A stretch of DNA of 38,343 nucleotides, from NCBI GenBank assembly GCA_943704425.1, contig CALSCP010001301.1:4957-43299 (forward strand), read 5' to 3'. Positions within the stretch are counted from its first letter, which is position 1; each line of letters begins with the position of its first letter. Below the pieces are notes generated by a model, which was given only the letters and a program-made list of their open reading frames with translations, made no database searches and was not told where the DNA came from. The stretch is from Ministeria vibrans ATCC 50519. Lineage: Eukaryota > Protista > Filasterea. Shown here in pieces: positions 7,483 through 35,427 of this stretch. A program made the translations under genes and the position numbers.

Positions 7483-8964
7483 ATGATCGACGTGCAGCTT
7501 GCCAATGCGGACCTGTGGTCGGCCTTTCACCGACACACGACAGAAATGATTCTCACTCGAAACGGCCGGTATTGCATCGCTGTCGCTCTCTCGCTTCCGC
7601 TTTCTCCGTCACACGCACAATCACTCGTTCTACTCTGCCTTTTCTCTCTTTCCATCAAAAATGTGTGAAAAACCCCCTTTTTTTCTTTTTTTTTTTTTTT
7701 TTTTTTCGACTCGCACTGGCAAAAACAGAGCCATGTTCGCACGCGTTCTCTTCACGTGCGACACGCGTGCCATATGTTCTATCTTAATCACGGCTGCTTC
7801 TGCTCCGTTTGCTATTGTACATGCCTATTTTTCCCGCTACGCTCTTGACAAGTGCGAACATTAACAACCTCGCACAACACAACGCGCGCGTTCTCGTCCG
7901 ATTCCCATTCGCAAGGCTCACTTTTTGTTGCATGCCTACTCGACACTCCCTCCCCCCTTTCTTATTGACGTGCTGACGATTCGTACCGGCCTCGGCGCGA
8001 GATGGGTCGCTGAAGTTGGTCGTTCTGTTGACTTAATCTCTCTCTCTCTCTCGCACTTGACTTTGCAGATGTCTCTTTCCCGTTCCACGCTTCAGCTTTC
8101 AAGGCCTCAAGGCGAGCCAGGAGTATGAAGTGGCACTTCTCATTGTGCCCGTGTCACCCAATCGCTGGCATTGGCGTAGCGACAGTCAGACGTGGGATCT
8201 GACTAGCAAACGGCCTACGGGTGGCGTTGCTGAAGCCAAACTGTACACCCACCCGACGTCGCCCGTTTCGGGCGCAACCCTCATGTCTAGTGAACTCCAC
8301 TTCCAGAAGCTGAAAATCACCAACACGGCCAACTCTCCGTTACACACGGTGCTCCTGTCGCTCGTCAAGTACTCCCTGCACGTCCGCCTGAGAGCCGTCG
8401 GCTCCTCGACCGACCTCATCTGCAAACCCTTTCCCCTCACCGAATTCATTGCGGTCACCGTCTATCAGAACTGGGACATTCGTCGTCTCAAGAAAGAAAC
8501 TAATCCACACGCGGGTCTGCCTTGTGGTCTGTCAGACACGACGGCCACCTTGCCCAGCTCGAGTTCGAGTTCGCGCCATCCACGACGCAAACGACAAAAA
8601 CCGAACCGTGCGCTGGAAGACAGTGGTAGTGGGGGCGATCTCAACGATGAGACAGACGAAGATGGTGCTGTCGTGGGAGTAGGCGGCGTGGGTGCGTACG
8701 ACATGGAGGGTGGCGGCCGTCGAAGCGCTGCCAACGGTGACACTTGGAGCAGCAAGGAAAAGAGCAAGAAACGCAAGCGCAGCGTTTCTGTGCCGAAACC
8801 GCATCCGCCTCTCATCAGTGGCCATCACCCGCATCATATGTACCGACCAACGCCCGATCAGATGGGCGTAGGCGGCAACCTGAACGGCCGCAACAACGGC
8901 GACGCACGCCACGACGAGGGCGAGCAAGGGACTGATGTTGGCGCGGACGAAGAGTACCAGGAAA

Positions 8965-9007
<43 letters not shown>

Positions 9008-10522
9008 CGACGATGATGAGTACGACGTTGATACGGAGATGGGTGGTGCACACAATCGGCGACGTCGATCCCAGCATCAGCACCAGCGACGGTTGTCGCG
9101 CACGCAGCAACACGGCGACACGACTGCCGATTTGTCAACGGCGCACGGTGGGCTACAGCCACAGACGTCGCGTTCGCTTGTGGTCAACACTATTGCTCCC
9201 ATTGCGCCTGGCGTGGTCGTACCCAGTGGCGTCTACCAGTCGGACAGTCGACACCACATTGCCAAGTCGTATTCGGGCACCAACAACTACGAATGGCAAC
9301 AGCTCATCAACGGCCAACAACAGCAACAGCATCAGCTCTTGCAAGCGCAGCTGCAACAGCAGGTCCATTTCAAGCAGCAATCCCAACATGCGGCTTCAAC
9401 AGCACCCGAAATAGCCACTCAGCAACCAACACCACCACCACCACAACAGCAGCAGCAGCAGCAACAACCGTTACCAACCACACCACTTGCGCTGCGCCAC
9501 CAGCGTCAACAAAGTGCTCTCTTGGACAAACGCTTCCGTCAGGTGGGCATTGCCATGTCGGAATCACAGCAGCTGCAAGTGCTCAATGAACTGGCGCAGC
9601 AAGAGATTCTCGACCAGGTGCTACATGCCGACACGTCCAAACTACAGTCGCTCATTAGCTCGCCGTCGCTATCTCACATCCTCTTCTCCGCCGGCATTTG
9701 TTCCAACGATTCGCCCGCGCCGACGTCGGATTTGCCTCACACACGTCCCTCGGCGAGCATCACGGCCATCAACGCACTGTTTGCACCGCGTGCACCGTCG
9801 CGTCTCTTGCACTCGAGCAGTCGCATGATTCTGCCGGGTGCCCGTCCCAACGGCAACCCCCATGCCTTTCCCCCTCCCCCTCGCCCGCAATTTCGATCAC
9901 CTCAACAACCACCATCGATGAAACAACCACAGCCACAGCCACAGCAATCACCGCAACAACACCAGCAGCAGTCGACAGCGTCCTCCTCTCCAATTCCGCG
10001 CCAGCTCAGTCGCTCCATTTCCGCGCAATTTGTGGCGGACAGCGCAGCTGCGTCGCCCTCACAGTATCTCATTCCATCCAATTCCCTGACACATTTGCAA
10101 CACTCGAGCAGTGCCGAGCAAGTCTTCGCACCCCCACCTTCGTCTGCACTTCAACAGTCACTCTCTCGCGACTTCCTCAACTCTCTGTCACGCACTAGTG
10201 TCCTGAACTTCAACCCACAGCTCGCCAGTGCACCCGCCCCCACACATCAACCCCAATCTACCTCCCCATCCGCTGCACCTTTGTCCACTTCCACCTTGGC
10301 CACAGCCTTGGTCCAAGGCGATTCCTCGTCGTCGCCTCCGCCCGAGAGCGCCTGGACCGCACCCTTGAAGCCAACGGCAATTCTCCTACAGCAGGGCAAA
10401 TGGAAGCACGCTCTGTGTCCCGACACGGGTCGTGCCACAATGTACATGTCTGACGAAGGGATACCTCTCGATCCCATTCCTGTGGTACGTCTTTTTAAAT
10501 AATAATAATAATAATAATAATA

Positions 10523-11255: not shown

Positions 11256-11516
11256 CCGATTCCTTATAAAATGATCACAATCCAAAATCGAATCACTCTT
11301 TTTCACCACTTCCACCCTCAGAGGCTTGTGTACTCACCCCAGCCTTTACCAATACCCCAAGCGACCCTTGTGACTTAGCTCACTCTCTTCCTTTTCCACA
11401 TAATGTAAGTCCCGTTTCACTCGACCCAACAAAAGTTACTCACACACTCTCGTCCGCCTTAGCTTTTTGGCCTGTCGTCGCCCCTTTACACAGCTACACG
11501 CTAGTGATGGAGGACG

Positions 11517-11683
11517 ATGCTGATTGTTACCCCCGCGGTCGCCACAGCACAGATCAATATCAACATGAAGAACACCAAAGTTAGATCACATCAACAGCGG
11601 ACGCGCAACGTCGCCATCATTGCACACGTCGATCACGGCAAGACAACGCTCTCCGACAGTCTCCTACACCGCGCCGGAAAGTA

Positions 11684-11774
<91 letters not shown>

Positions 11775-12551
11775 NNNNNNNNNNTTTTTTGTCTCTTGGT
11801 CTTATTAGTCTTCGCGAAGACGGCATTGGCACCACCTGCTCGTTGGATTCGGACGAGCAGGAGAAGGCACGCGGCATTACCATCAATTCGACGGGAATTC
11901 GCCTGCGCTACACCGACTATGGCCCGCCAGTGACGTCGTCGAGTGCCATGCCGGACAGCGACCTGTCTGCTGCAACCACCACCACCACCACCACCACCAC
12001 CACCGCCACCACCACCACCACCACCACTACCACCACCTCGCTGTACATTGGCAATGTTCCCTGGCACTTGGCCGAGCACGACGATCTGGGCCTGGCTGTG
12101 CTGCGCAAATTGCTCGAGGAGCGCGCCGGTGCCAAGTCGGTCATCGACTTGACTGTTCGTCCCAAGCGCGGCTTTGCCATGGCGACCCTCTCGAGCACCA
12201 CAGCCGTGGATGCGTGCCTTGCACCCCCCGCGTTGCATCTTGAGGGTCGTGACCTTCAGCTGGCCGCCCACGGCGACGCTCCTCAACAGCGTCTGGCGGC
12301 GTGGTGTCGTGAACAGGGCTGGCGTCCCCCGGCCTACACGGAGACGTCAACGAGTCTTCCGGGCGCCGCACTCGTTTCTGTTGCCATCGACTCGGCTGAC
12401 ACTCCGGGCGCCCGACGCTTTTTCTTGTCCCCGCAACCATCAGCAACGGTCAAGGAGGCGCGACACGCTGCTGCCTCGGCAGCCCTTGACGCTCTGGTGG
12501 TTCCTACTATGACTGGCGTTGTGGAGGACAGTGACAACAACAACAACAACG

Positions 12552-12583
<32 letters not shown>

Positions 12584-14917
12584 AACGTGGGGCTGACGGT
12601 CAATCTGATTGACTCACCGGGCCACGTCGACTTTAACAGCGAGGTTTCGTCGGCTCTGCGTCTCGCGGACGGTGCCCTTCTTGTCGTGGACGCTGTCGAC
12701 GGCGTGTCGGCGCAAACGGAGACAGTCCTTCGACAGGCACTTGCCGAACGCGTTCAGCCTGTGCTCGTCATCAACAAGATTGACCGGTACTTCCTCGAGC
12801 TTCACCTCACCGCCGACGAGATGCACTCGCGATTTGCCGCGTTGGTCGCCAGTGTCAACACGATCATTGAGGACTTTGACACGAGCTTCTGTGTCAATCC
12901 CAAGGACGGCAACGTTGCATTTGTGAGCGCCAAGCAAGGCTGGGGCTTTAGTCTCGACACGTTTGCGCGCGTTCACGCGGCCAAGCGTGGCGCCGGACGT
13001 GACACCGATGCCGCTCTCATTGCCAAGCTGCGTCGTCGTCTCTGGGAGAGCTCGGGTGCCTTTGCCGAAGGCATCATTGCGCCACTCCAGGGCTTCTTTG
13101 AGCTGGCTGATCAACTTGCGCGCGACCCTTCCAGCATGGACGCTACCATCGAGCGTGCACTGGAGCGTCTGACGCAGCTCGGCTCTCGACGAGTCGTGAG
13201 CACGACGGCCTTGCGCAAGCGTCTGGACGCCCAGCCGCAGGGCAAGGAGGCCAAGGAACTGTTGCGATTCTCCTTGCACTCATGGCTTCCCGCCGCCGAC
13301 GTGCTCCTTGACATGATGTACGCACACATTCCAAGCCCGGACAAGGCTCAGCGCCACCGCGTTCCCGTGCTCTACAGCGGTCCCGTCGACGACGAGTGTG
13401 GTCAGGCCATTTGTGACGCAAATCCCGACGGTCCTCTCATGTTCTTCGCGTCGAAGCTCGTGCAGGAGCCTACCGCTCGCGGTGGTGCGGCCACCAGCAA
13501 CAAGTTTATTGCCTTTGGTCGTGTCTACGCTGGCACTGTGCGTCCCGGTGATCGTGTGCGCGTACTCACTCCTGAGTACGTTGCTCCCGTCGAGGGCGCA
13601 GCGGCATCGTCGTCGTCTGCCAACAGCAAGAACGCCTACATGGCCCGCGTCCAGTCGGTTGTGTGTTTCCAAGGTGCAAAGCGTGGCGATCCCGTCTCCA
13701 TTGCGTACCCCGGCGACATTGTTGGTCTCATTGGTGTTGACGCTCACCTGAACAAGAGCGGCACAGTGACGACGAGTGACGTCGCGCACTCAATGCGTGT
13801 GCTCCGCCTCACAGTCGCACCCGTTGTTCGCGTTGCCATTGAGGCGGTGCGTCCCAGCGAATTGCCCAAGCTCGTTGATGCCATGCGTCGTCTGGCCAAG
13901 GCCGATCCACTGCTGCGCTGTCCGCCACCTCAGGAGAACAACGGTCAAAATCTGATTTGTGCCGCGGGCGAGCTTCACCTCGAGGTGTCGCTCAAGAAGC
14001 TCGAAACCTTCTCGGCGGGCATTCAGGTGCGCGTGGGTCGTCCCACCGTCGAGTATTGCGAGACGGTGCTGGGCGACAGTGAGCCTGTCTGGGCAAAGTC
14101 GAGCAACAAGCACAACCGTTTGTCGATCACAGCGCATCCTTTGCCCGCCTCCTTTGTCCAGGCAGTTGCCGACGAGGACATTGTCTGGCCTCCGCGCGGC
14201 GAAGGCTCGGCCGTGGCATTTGCACGCAAGCTCGTCACTGAGCACAGCATTGACGCCAACATGGCGCGTCGCGTCATGTACGTGACTACGCCGGCTGACA
14301 TGGGCGAGCGTGGTCTCGGCTGCATGCTTGTCGACGGAACCACCTCGGTGCAAAACCTCGGAGCAATCCGCGACTCCATCACGGCCGCTCTCCAATGGGT
14401 GTGTCGCGAGGGACCTCTCTGCAACGAGCAGCAGCGAGGTGTCATGTATGTGATTCGCGACGCCAAGATTCACGGCGACGCCGCCCATCGTGGCACCTCC
14501 GAGATTCTCCCGTGTGCTCGACGAGGCTTCTACGCGGCCTTTCTTAGCGCCTTGCCGGCTCTGCTCGAACCTGTGTTCGAGGCGGAGATTCAAGCGCCCG
14601 ACGACTGTCTTGGCAAGATCTTCTCAACGCTCAATACGCGTCGCGGTCGCATCGTGTCGCACGAACCGCAGCGTGTGCTAGCCTCCCTGCCTGTCGCTGA
14701 GTCTTTTGGCTTTGTCGGCGATCTCCGTGGCGTTACCAGCGGTCGGGCTTTTGTGAATCTGCGCTTCGATCACTGGGAGCCGCTGCCGGGCGCTGTCCAG
14801 GAAGCTGTCAACGCGAGCGAGACCAATCTGGCATCGACTGTGTGCACTGGCGTGCGTGTGCGCAAGGGCATGTCTCCCGTCGTGCCTGCACCCTCACATT
14901 ACTCTGACCGTCTCTAA
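11517..14917 (+). CDS. Eukaryotic elongation factor 2 (eEF2) paralog with an RRM + dsRBD insertion in the G domain
   Basis: Exon 1 is 11517 (or 11565)-11680 with [20 protein letters not shown]. Intron 11681-11808 (GTAAG, poly-T, gap, TTAG). Exon 2 is 11809-14917 with [78 protein letters not shown] and [23 protein letters not shown]. These motifs are eEF2-type rather than EFL1-type. Possible 5'UTR intron at 11405-11493. Confidence 0.9.
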
Positions 14918-15225
14918 GACAGTCTCTTGTGTGTGTGTGTGTGTGTCTGTGTGTGTGTTTGTGTGTGTGTGTTGTTCTTAGCGTGTCTTAGCGGGTGAAC
15001 ACATGTTGAGTCTTTGCGTGACGAAGGTGTGTGTGTGCGTGTGTGTGAAGGGAGGACAAGATGTTGAGCGAAGAGACTGTGCACTGTGGACGACTGAGCG
15101 TGGCCCCAGGACGCAATCCCAGTCTCGCCTCATCTCTTTTTCTTCCTTCTTTCACCGACTCTCTTAACCTCTTAAACGTTTCTTGTCTTTGTGTTTACTT
15201 TTCCATTTCACGCGCTTTTTTGTTT

Positions 15226-15484: not shown

Positions 15485-18400
15485 TCAAGTAGGCTTGGAC
15501 TTTTTGGCCTTGGCCATCTTTTTGGCGGCCTTTTCGTCCTTGTCCTTGCGTTTGAACAGGCCGAATTTGGACTTCTTGCCACGAACAGGTTTGTCGCTTG
15601 TCGCATGGGAAGGGTCCCAAGCGTCACCGTACGCTGCCAATTTAGAATCGATGGGGGTTCCGTCTGCATCGTAGTCGTGCTGCAGACGATGTGCTAGGCC
15701 AGCGACACTGGCCACGTCGCTGAGCGCCGTGCTGGCCACATCGTCGTCATCATTATCCCGCACGGGTGAGCGCGATATGTGCAGGGCCAGTGCCGACGCC
15801 TGCTTGTCAATCATGTCACGTTCCAACGCTTTCGTCGCCTCGGTCTCCTGTTGTGCAGCTGCAGCCGCACGGGCCTCTTCCGCCTTCTTCTGCGCCACAG
15901 ACGTCGCCACGGCCGCCAAGATCGCATCCTCCACGTCGTCTGCTTCCATCGCCAGCTCCGAGTGAGTGCGCACCAATGCTGGCTGAGGCTCCGCCTCTGT
16001 CGTACCGTCACTCGACACCTTATCTTCGTCGTCCTTGTCGCGACCAGCGTCCACTCCAATCTCAATGGTGCTTGCCAAACTGCTCTCACTCGAGCTGTGG
16101 GCGGCTCTTGTGGTGGGTGGAGCTTCAACCGGTGTTGTCTTTGGTACTGTCTTCTCCTCTTCCATCGCGGTCACATGTGCCTCCTTCTCTATCACCACTT
16201 TCGGCAATGTCACATGCGCCTCCTCCACTATCACCACTTTCTGCGATGACTTCCCTACCGCCTCTTGCACTCTCATCTCCTCTTCCACCCCGACCCTGTG
16301 TTCTTGTTGCACGCGTTGCTCCTGCTCCTGTTGCTCCACACGCTTCGCCAAATCCTTCTCGCGCACACTCGCCTCTTTCATCAAATCTTGTTCCAGCGCT
16401 CGCAAACGTTCGGACTCGCGCTCGGAAGCTTTGCGGGCCTCCGCCAACGCACGCGCCTGTTCCTCCATTTTGAGTCGCGCCACTCTCGCTCGCTCCACCT
16501 CCTTCTCTCGTTCCTCGTTCAATTCTGCTTCCGTCGCGTGCCACCACCACCAGAGCGAGCGCATCTCCTCAAGACCGAGTGTGCGGGTGCGACATACAAT
16601 GTTGCTACGATCCACGCCGCTGCGCGCGGCGCCACTCGAGAGTACATGTCGTCCAGTGGCCTCGTCGGAGCACGGACAGAAGGGCACAATTACCGGGTCG
16701 GTGTCAAAGCGCCCCCAATGGGACTGCTGACCCACGGCCGAGGCGGCCGCCACAAGATACTCAAGCGTGCGATTGACCTGACGCCAGGCGTCCACTGACG
16801 TCGTGCCCACGCGCAAACTCGCCACAATCCAGTCATCCTCCTCGCTATACTCCAACATGAGCTCGCAAAGACCACCCAACGAGACGTACGCACCGTTGGC
16901 CGACACGCGCGGCATCGGGTCGTCCATCTGAATGTCGCAGCAGAGTCGCACCACGAGACGATTGAACAAAAGCAACGAGAGTACTTGTCGACGCTCCACA
17001 CCCTTGATGGTGACCGGCCAGTAGAGCACACAGCGACGTACGCCCGAGGCAAAGCTCCATGGACCCACTTGCCACGGTTGCAGCCCCTTGTCGAGAAGCA
17101 GCGGAATCACCACAAGACGATAGTCATCGTCGTGATGGTCCTGTCGCGACAGTGTATGCATCAGTCCTAGCTGCTCAAGCAGCGCCAAAAACTCGTCGAC
17201 ATAACGCACGCCCAGCGAGCTCAGCGTGTCATGCACAAACGACAAAAGAATGGGTTCCTCGGGACACTCATGCAGTCGTCGCAGTGCCTCACGATGCGGC
17301 TCTCGTCGGTCCGCCGGCAATCTCTCCAACACTTAACAAGGAAAATACATATTAACCTACAGAGATACACAGCCAGAGCTTTATTGAATTTTACCTTGAG
17401 AGAGAATTTCAAGGGACTGCTGATCGGCTGTGGAACTTGGTGGCTGGACGGGGCGACGAGCGGCGGCATCAACGACACGGTACAGGCCCGCACACGCATT
17501 GACGACCGACTTGACGTCGAGGAAGAGACAGTCGTCATGCGACGACCTTATCGCATCTCCAATTCGCTCGAGGTACCCCAAGAATCCGGAACGACACTCT
17601 GACTAAATAAACAAAAATATTATTATTAGAAAATATTTATTTTAAAAATAAATAGAGAATCAAGAGCTGTACAGTACAATAATATTATTATTAAATAATT
17701 TTTTTATAATGAGCGTTTTTTTTTGTAGTATTGGTTGGGCTTACCTCGGAGATATTATGAGCGTCAGCTAGTTCAACAAGAGCATCCGTGGTCATGACGG
17801 CATTTTGAGGATCAGACGCAACGAGGTCGCGCAGGGCATCACCCAGACGTACCCACGCAAGGGGCTGGGGTGTCTGGAAGGTCTTGTCGTTGCTGACGGC
17901 GCTGTTGATGGCCTTGCGCAGCTCATCAATGCCTTAACGTGAGATAATGGGAGAGGTGTACGTGATGGGAAGAATATGGTGGGAAGGGTTGAGTACTAGG
18001 AATACAGTGTGAAGTTTCATCGTACCATCGCCATTGAGATTGGAGACAGTGTAGAACATATCGCCTTCGCCGTCGTCGTTGCACATCATGGGAGCGTGGA
18101 GGTGCACGTCGCCACACCACACGGACTCGAGAAAGGTGTTCATGTCGTCGGAGACATCGTCAATCTGGTCGTCGGGAATCAGGTCGACGTGCGTCGCGAC
18201 AATGACCACCTGTCCTCCCTGCGTGCGCTGACCAATGCGACGAAGCCAGGCGGCGACAGCGCGGTGCTGCTGTGCTGCCAAGTCGCCGCCACGCCACACA
18301 TTGTGTAGGTCAAAGACGACAATGAAGATGGCACAGTCGCTAATAAACAGCGACTGCAACGGTGTGTAGCGGTCCTGGCCGGCAAAGTCGAATAGTTCGA

Positions 18401-32598: not shown

Positions 32599-35427
<2,829 letters not shown>

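Follow-up and report, generated by a model that had tools for sequence, protein, structure and literature searches.

The question raised by a 38,343-nucleotide stretch of the Ministeria vibrans ATCC 50519 genome (contig CALSCP010001301.1; the whole stretch is referred to here as the window) was whether one of its genes, located at 11517-14917 on the plus strand and encoding a five-domain GTPase derived from eEF2, carries two RNA-binding-type domains within its GTPase (G) domain and, if so, what the product of such a gene might do. The initial annotation, made from the sequence alone, had proposed that an RNA recognition motif (RRM) and a double-stranded RNA-binding domain (dsRBD) interrupt the G domain of an eEF2 paralog. 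The analysis showed that this gene is a real, expressed and divergent eEF2 paralog with an RRM and a dsRBD inside the G domain.

Compared to canonical eEF2, the protein encoded by the gene (the window protein) has approximately 210 extra residues, comprising the RRM, the dsRBD and their linkers, and the whole insert is in frame. The RRM is followed directly by the dsRBD-fold domain, and this pair, the cassette, is carried on two low-complexity linkers of approximately 25 amino acids each that extend from the hairpin turn connecting strands beta2 and beta3, in the segment between switch I and the G3 motif. The annotated make-up of the insert, a poly-Thr stretch, an RRM, a dsRBD and an Asn/Asp linker, was borne out, with the elements placed as follows:

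11964 to 12037, plus strand: poly-Thr low-complexity linker (ACC repeat), read from the sequence; a Thr-rich linker is present at the same site in the nearest relative, P0125.
12035 to 12274, plus strand: RRM, with RNP2 SLYIGNV at 12038 and RNP1 KRGFAMATL; profile positions 3-85 of an alignment of cassettes (A4), an AlphaFold2 b-a-b-b-a-b fold over residues 2-79, and Foldseek.
12278 to 12502, plus strand: dsRBD-fold domain, adjoining the RRM; A4 profile positions 85-153, an AlphaFold2 a-b-b-b-a fold over residues 84-156, and Foldseek.
12503 to 12588, plus strand: Asn/Asp-rich low-complexity linker leading back into strand beta3, read from the sequence.

The assignment of the two domains was based on profile and structure comparisons. 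Pfam searches with the window sequence alone gave no RRM match, and the only match within the insert was to DND1_DSRM, which was below the cut-off (3.4e-5 to 6.9e-5; 24.5 bits for the dsRBD compared to a cut-off of 25.7). RRM_1 was above the cut-off in the orthologs P0002 and P0132, the former being a transcriptome sequence that is 35% identical to the window protein by BLASTP at 100% coverage and has its insert at the same place. Alignment A4 was constructed from eight cassettes, that of the window and seven cut from environmental or transcript contigs. When its profile was compared to solved structures, the first half matched the RRMs of nucleolin (2e-13), CIRBP, U2AF65 and hnRNP A1, and the second half matched the dsRBDs of TARBP2 (1e-8), Loquacious (5e-8), Staufen1 and R2D2. 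Consistent with these matches, AlphaFold2 run on A4 returned a model with a predicted local distance difference test (pLDDT) score of 86.4 and the secondary structure order b-a-b-b-a-b followed by a-b-b-b-a; this run superseded an AlphaFold prediction from the insert as a single sequence (pLDDT 44). Foldseek matched the RRM half to ZNF638 RRM1 (template modelling (TM) score of 0.77), RBM39 and Fox1, and the dsRBD half to DCL4 dsRBD2 (TM score of 0.77), Loqs, HYL1 and DUS2, with the dsRBD of DHX29 also among the matches. The annotation had expected a domain search to return RRM_1 and dsrm; the window sequence alone gave a sub-threshold DND1_DSRM match and no RRM, and both folds were supported by the eight-member profile, AlphaFold2 and Foldseek. 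A word-seeded search with the cassette alone gave no match and missed even P0002, a result that reflects the method and says nothing about absence. The aromatic residues of the RRM were conserved in A4, with the RNP2 Tyr present in seven of the eight cassettes and the RNP1 Phe/Trp in all eight; the consensus sequences were LY[VI]GN for RNP2 and [KR]RGFA for RNP1.

Retention of the insert in RNA was examined using contigs from four public runs (four studies, including one poly(A) RNA-seq library), which were placed on positions 11450-15050. Spliced contigs from three of these studies (runs X1, X5 and X6) contained the cassette, continuous with the remaining coding sequence, as the annotation had required. 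The spliced 5' contigs ran uninterrupted past 11912 and entered the Thr-encoding ACC repeat. In each of runs X1 and X5, the RRM and dsRBD (12044-12523), the Asn/Asp linker and 12594-14916 were spanned by one contig; in run X6 the segments 12044-12523 and 12594-14916 were on two separate contigs. No joint that skipped the insert was seen in the RNA contigs of the four runs, which indicates that splicing does not remove it. The poly(A) run, X13, was shallow and had no contig over 12044-12523, and hence bears on splicing only. The 80-nucleotide ACC repeat was not bridged by any short-read contig, and the flanking contigs reached 41 and 46 nucleotides into it.

Several sequence variants and contig ends were also recorded. 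The Asn/Asp repeat (12524-12593) was 73 nucleotides long in run X5 compared to 70, an in-frame length variant, and run X6 had A for C at 11868, which changes Ala to Glu and gives an eEF2-like ..E-RGITI, as well as a synonymous T>A at 12292. The short-read contigs stopped at each simple repeat, and a TG repeat (14930-14975) lies just past the stop codon.

The same contigs defined the gene model. One long open frame on the plus strand covers 11789-14917, and upstream of it a different frame segment holds the G1 motif AHVDHGKTT. The annotation had described all of the GTPase motifs as intact, which proved to be correct, except that the GKT of G1 had to be placed in a separate upstream exon that ends at 11680, before a 128-nucleotide intron. 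The borders of this intron are fixed by the RNA contigs, since these hold exactly 6 nucleotides (CGGAAA) between 11674 and 11809; it contains a poly-T run of approximately 90 nucleotides (11687-11774) and a 10-N assembly gap. Translation was taken to begin at the ATG at 11517, the first in-frame ATG past two stops, with an alternative ATG at 11565. Upstream of the gene, the unmatched leading letters of the contigs from three runs corresponded to 11376-11404 with one mismatch, which revealed an intron in the 5' untranslated region (UTR). Only exon 2 (window:11819-14914) was used for the protein searches, exon 1 having been read on its own. The parts of the gene are:

11405 to 11462, plus strand: 5' UTR intron, GTAAGT ... 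TTAG; the RNA contig matches of three runs stop at 11463.
11517 to 11680, plus strand: exon 1, coding part, containing G1 (AHVDHGKTT); from the translation, with its end set by RNA contigs.
11681 to 11808, plus strand: coding-region intron, GTAAGT ... TTATTAG, 128 nucleotides; absent from the contigs of all four runs, the poly(A) RNA-seq run included.
11809 to 14917, plus strand: exon 2, the remaining coding sequence, with a TAA stop at 14915-14917; one open frame, with RNA contigs colinear to 14916.

Outside the insert the protein has the body of an EF2-family factor. A G domain with G1-G5, domain II, EFG_III, EFG_IV and EFG_C were all present, and Pfam matched GTP_EFTU in two stretches (1.4e-32), EFG_C (2.4e-21), EFG_IV (4.8e-12) and EFG_III (1.2e-9), with EF-G domain 2 also found. 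The RGITI, DSPGH and NKID motifs were located where they had been annotated:

11870 to 11884, plus strand: G2/switch I motif RGITI, invariant in alignments A1 and A2.
12611 to 12625, plus strand: G3 motif DSPGH with the catalytic His, invariant in A1 and A2; D.PGH is invariant in the family alignment A5.
12773 to 12784, plus strand: G4 motif NKID, with invariant N, K and D columns.
14471 to 14494, plus strand: domain IV tip H.D..HRG, with H885, D887 and H890 invariant compared to eEF2.

The His at the eEF2 diphthamide position is kept (H890 of the exon-2 translation, 14486-14488), as is the NKHNR loop of domain IV, in which K764-R767 are invariant compared to eEF2. Across the 13 members of A5 the DxPGH, NKxD, QTxxVL, NK.NR and H.D..H columns were invariant, including both His residues of the domain IV tip. 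The spacing from G2 to G3 is 252 amino acids in the window protein, compared to 32-45 in nine of 11 named canonical eEF2 proteins; the other two have 64 and 84 amino acids, which shows that the beta2-beta3 loop tolerates insertions. In the a/eEF2-specific (G') subdomain, which had been described as shortened, the WGD..F..KKW segment is indeed absent. Other residues have been inserted, however, and the region is 124 amino acids long compared to 115-124 in canonical eEF2; the subdomain is therefore better described as remodelled than as shortened.

The window gene is not the canonical eEF2 gene of this genome. The window protein is 40-43% identical to eEF2 proteins from across eukaryotes, it is not the main copy, it has the 252-residue G2-G3 segment and no WGD..F.....KKW, and the trees group canonical eEF2 proteins apart from it. 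A canonical eEF2 is encoded on contig C2463; it is 56-67% identical to fungal eEF2 and its FTDTR and WGD..KKW segments are intact. EFL1 is encoded on contig C1064, where Pfam PF25118 was above the cut-off (1.7e-13), and a probable Snu114-like gene, assigned in part by the Snu114 N-terminal motif, lies on contig C498. Since all three are separate in the genome, the window gene is an additional paralog. In agreement with this conclusion, the EFL1-specific domain PF25118 had no Pfam match on the window protein, and a long acidic N-terminal domain of the Snu114 type is absent, only 17-33 residues preceding G1. A search of this genome for a stand-alone RRM-dsRBD gene did not find one, the best other match being an ordinary tandem-RRM gene.

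Cassette-bearing eEF2 paralogs form a family across several eukaryotic supergroups and are not confined to a single case. An exhaustive profile search of 1.84 billion representatives, together with a local scan using the cassette profile, identified at least 22 further protein clusters with the cassette. Named carriers were Chromera velia, Ancoracysta twista, Rhizochromulina marina, Cafeteria and the choanoflagellates Stephanoeca diplocostata, Savillea parva and Acanthoecidae sp.; the others were environmental. No animal, fungus or land plant was among the named carriers in the matches listed. Since the family is present in close unicellular relatives of animals and has no named member from an animal, it would mark the loss of a gene along the stem leading to animals. 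Identity across the A5 members was 36-41%. When a profile of 13 full-length members was searched against a 90% identity database, canonical eEF2 proteins were dominant and the only new members were P0287, P0289, P0290 and P0293.

In five clusters (P0168, P0182, P0208, P0244 and P0256) the cassette is N-terminal, before G1, and the beta2-beta3 loop is short; in the family tree these clusters form two lineages nested among the internal-insert forms. In Ras-like G domains, such as those of the Arf GTPases, the N-terminus adjoins the beta2-beta3 ("interswitch") turn at the pole opposite the nucleotide. This proximity would explain why the same cassette is found at the N-terminus in some relatives, and both architectures would present the cassette from about the same spot. 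The two attachment points, hairpin turn and N-terminus, would then represent a domain relocation constrained by three-dimensional proximity.

Two phylogenetic trees were constructed. In the first, from which the cassette columns were excluded and in which archaeal EF2 was the outgroup, 14 of 15 cassette bearers clustered, and the window protein was pulled to the cassette-less long branches P0133 and P0138 (rotifer Seison). One clade of all cassette bearers was not rejected by the approximately unbiased (AU) test (p = 0.54), and the tree constrained in this way was better by 3.2 log-likelihood units. In the second, a tree of the family, the window protein grouped with P0125, P0132 and P0287 at 90/90, the three choanoflagellates grouped at 100/99, and a set including both named stramenopiles was recovered at 99/96. 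The window protein also shares with P0125 the Thr-rich linker and the motifs GN.PW and PQQ.LA. Because of the AU test, the better constrained score, the placement in the second tree and these shared features, the grouping with P0133 and P0138 was read as long-branch attraction. Because the cassette columns were retained in the family tree, the separation from eEF2 seen there does not count as independent evidence. The rows for the genome's own EFL1 and Snu114 were single exons on very long branches and were uninformative. Rooting on archaeal EF2 did not resolve the basal branching of the eukaryotic sequences and so did not date the duplication.

Other divergent eEF2-like proteins were seen in the course of this work. 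P0124 (900 amino acids, on a 116-kb Logan contig) falls beside the choanoflagellate cassette clade, yet has only 66 amino acids between G2 and G3; this may be a secondary loss of the cassette or a genomic gene model that skips the cassette exon. Many other proteins (P0127, P0128, P0129, P0131, P0133, P0134, P0138, P0139 and P0144) are divergent and eEF2-like but lack the cassette, with end branches of 0.9-1.4. They include one from the rotifer Seison nebaliae and two in which the eEF2-specific segment is shortened. It seems that additional paralogs of eEF2 are commoner in eukaryotes than the three-member picture suggests.

With regard to function, we consider most likely, at about even odds, the reading that the window protein belongs to a previously unlisted family of eEF2-derived paralogs that act as ribosome-binding, translocase-like GTPases and are recruited or regulated via RNA. 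The protein would still dock at the ribosomal factor-binding site and hydrolyse GTP there like eEF2, and the flexibly tethered cassette would bind RNA, either mRNA or rRNA near the factor site. The RNA context would then decide the recruitment or the action of the GTPase, by a logic like that of SelB. Several observations weigh against this reading. The window protein is fast-evolving, with an end branch of about 1.1-1.2, as expected under a changed function, and its a/eEF2-specific subdomain has been remodelled. Snu114 keeps eEF2-like motifs though it works off the ribosome. Of the motifs by which canonical dsRBDs contact dsRNA, the helix-1 Glu and the GPxH loop, both of which are variable, are missing, and of KKxAK only K-x-A-[RK] remains, with two of the three basic residues. 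Finally, the RRM and the dsRBD are near neutral, with net charges of -4 to +4, which is unusual for strong RNA binders. The interpretation given in the initial annotation was supported in part: binding of single- and double-stranded RNA by the cassette is putative, and the roles it suggested, in moving ribosomes through structured mRNA, in ribosome rescue or hibernation, or in sensing dsRNA or viruses, are guesses.

We regard as unlikely the proposal that the family is an old, possibly pre-LECA (last eukaryotic common ancestor), fourth cytoplasmic branch of the eukaryotic EF2 family, since lost by animals, fungi and plants. The cassette would read specific structures in mRNA or rRNA, making the protein an mRNA-element-guided translocase, active in recoding, on structured mRNAs or in selective translation, and an EF2-side counterpart of SelB.

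A similarly low probability was assigned to the suggestion that the protein is a ribonucleoprotein remodeller working off the translating ribosome, as Snu114 does in the spliceosome and EFL1 on pre-60S particles; its eEF2 body would have been co-opted by a different RNA-protein machine, with the cassette as a targeting module. Long branches and the remodelled a/eEF2-specific subdomain are consistent with such a role, and both of the known cytoplasmic or nuclear eEF2 paralogs abandoned translocation (Atkinson 2015, PMC4342817; Narrowe 2018, PMC6143161). The Snu114-like exon on C498 also ends in RGGGQIIPTARR, and conservation of the domain IV tip is thus no proof of translocase function. Against it, both EFL1 and a Snu114-like protein are encoded elsewhere in the genome, the window protein has neither the acidic N-terminal domain nor the EFL1 insert, and the NK.NR loop and both domain-IV-tip His residues are invariant across a family whose members are so divergent in overall sequence.

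It is likewise doubtful, though worth the same weight, that the cassette is not an mRNA reader at all and serves instead as an rRNA anchor, attached for example to an expansion segment or to a helix close to the factor site, or as a protein-protein module, in which case the window protein would be an eEF2 variant with altered ribosome affinity, acting for example on idle or hibernating ribosomes. The partly degenerate set of RNA-binding motifs in the dsRBD and the near-neutral cassette would fit this suggestion. Ribosome-binding dsRBDs exist, that of DHX29 (43S/80S complexes) being among the fold matches, and the closest resemblances in Pfam and ESM are to dsRBDs of the DND1 type. However, the RNP1 and RNP2 aromatics typical of RRMs that bind single-stranded RNA are conserved, and the long flexible linkers are better suited to a distant or variable ligand than to a fixed dock.

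The simple repeats on both sides of the insert (ACC; AAC/GAC), an assembly gap 130 nucleotides upstream and the failure of Pfam alone to give a significant match on the window's own insert could suggest that the insert is not part of the protein but an intron that escaped recognition, a chimera of the assembly or a low-complexity expansion in frame by chance, which is very improbable given that spliced RNA contigs from several studies retain it, that transcriptome orthologs from distant taxa have the same two domains at the same site, and that a confident fold prediction agrees with the profile matches. The RNA contigs, the orthologs, the profile matches and the fold model together ruled out an intron or a chimera.

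Elsewhere in the window, the upstream neighbour is an open frame at 8130-10502 on the plus strand that encodes a poly-Gln/Asp-rich protein, and the downstream neighbour is an open frame at 15485-17332 on the minus strand that encodes a Glu/Ala-rich, coiled-coil-like protein. An assembly gap of approximately 470 N (33354-33820), between GA and CT dinucleotide repeats, accounts for a bin of 27% GC at 33-34 kb. In the databases, eukaryotic eEF2 genes were encountered in assemblies labelled bacterial or archaeal (L023-L028 and L032), which represent contamination or mis-binning; they include two Gluconobacter aidae AC10 contigs that are approximately 95% identical to plant eEF2 and L032, which lies on a 1.7-Mb contig labelled Desulfobacterium and whose longest exon is approximately 80% identical to eEF2 of eukaryotes.

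In comparison with known systems, a survey of translational GTPases (PMC4342817) and a study of EF-2 evolution (PMC6143161) name eEF2, Ria1/EFL1 and Snu114 as the only members in the cytoplasm and nucleus of eukaryotes, and neither mentions an RRM or a dsRBD. Full-text literature searches found no description of an EF2 architecture with an RRM and a dsRBD, in agreement with the annotators, who knew of none; their statement that canonical eEF2, EFL1 and Snu114 contain neither domain was supported. The eukaryotic EF2 family is usually described as having three cytoplasmic or nuclear members, and the window gene represents a conserved, expressed further member with RNA-binding-type domains in its G domain.

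The window protein shares with canonical eEF2 the five-domain layout, G1-G5, the NKHNR loop, the His at the diphthamide position and the C-terminal ..RKG....P......D+L tail, and differs from it in its 40-43% identity, in the extra residues of the beta2-beta3 hairpin and in lacking WGD..F..KKW. Snu114 (EFTUD2) and EFL1/Ria1 are likewise derived from eEF2, kept its domain layout and gained a lineage-defining extra segment, and they are precedents for a changed function; their extra segments, the acidic N-terminal domain and the PF25118 insert, are not those of the window protein.

Proteins of the DND1/A1CF type also have an RRM followed directly by a non-canonical dsRBD, and DND1 provided both the best Pfam match (DND1_DSRM) and the nearest ESM Atlas clusters (cosine 0.77); unlike the window protein, these proteins have no GTPase. 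Since the DND1 scores are below threshold (24.5 compared to 25.7 bits; cosine 0.77), a common origin is only a lead.

Should the window protein act on ribosomes, no EF2-type factor before it would have been open to steering by an RNA ligand, and it would be a natural system in which to study mRNA- or ribosome-specific translocation. SelB/eEFSec is a translational GTPase whose C-terminal winged-helix appendage recognises structured RNA, so that it acts at particular mRNA sites. The likeness to the window protein is in logic only: SelB/eEFSec belongs to the EF1/SelB branch, and there is no sequence relationship between the two.

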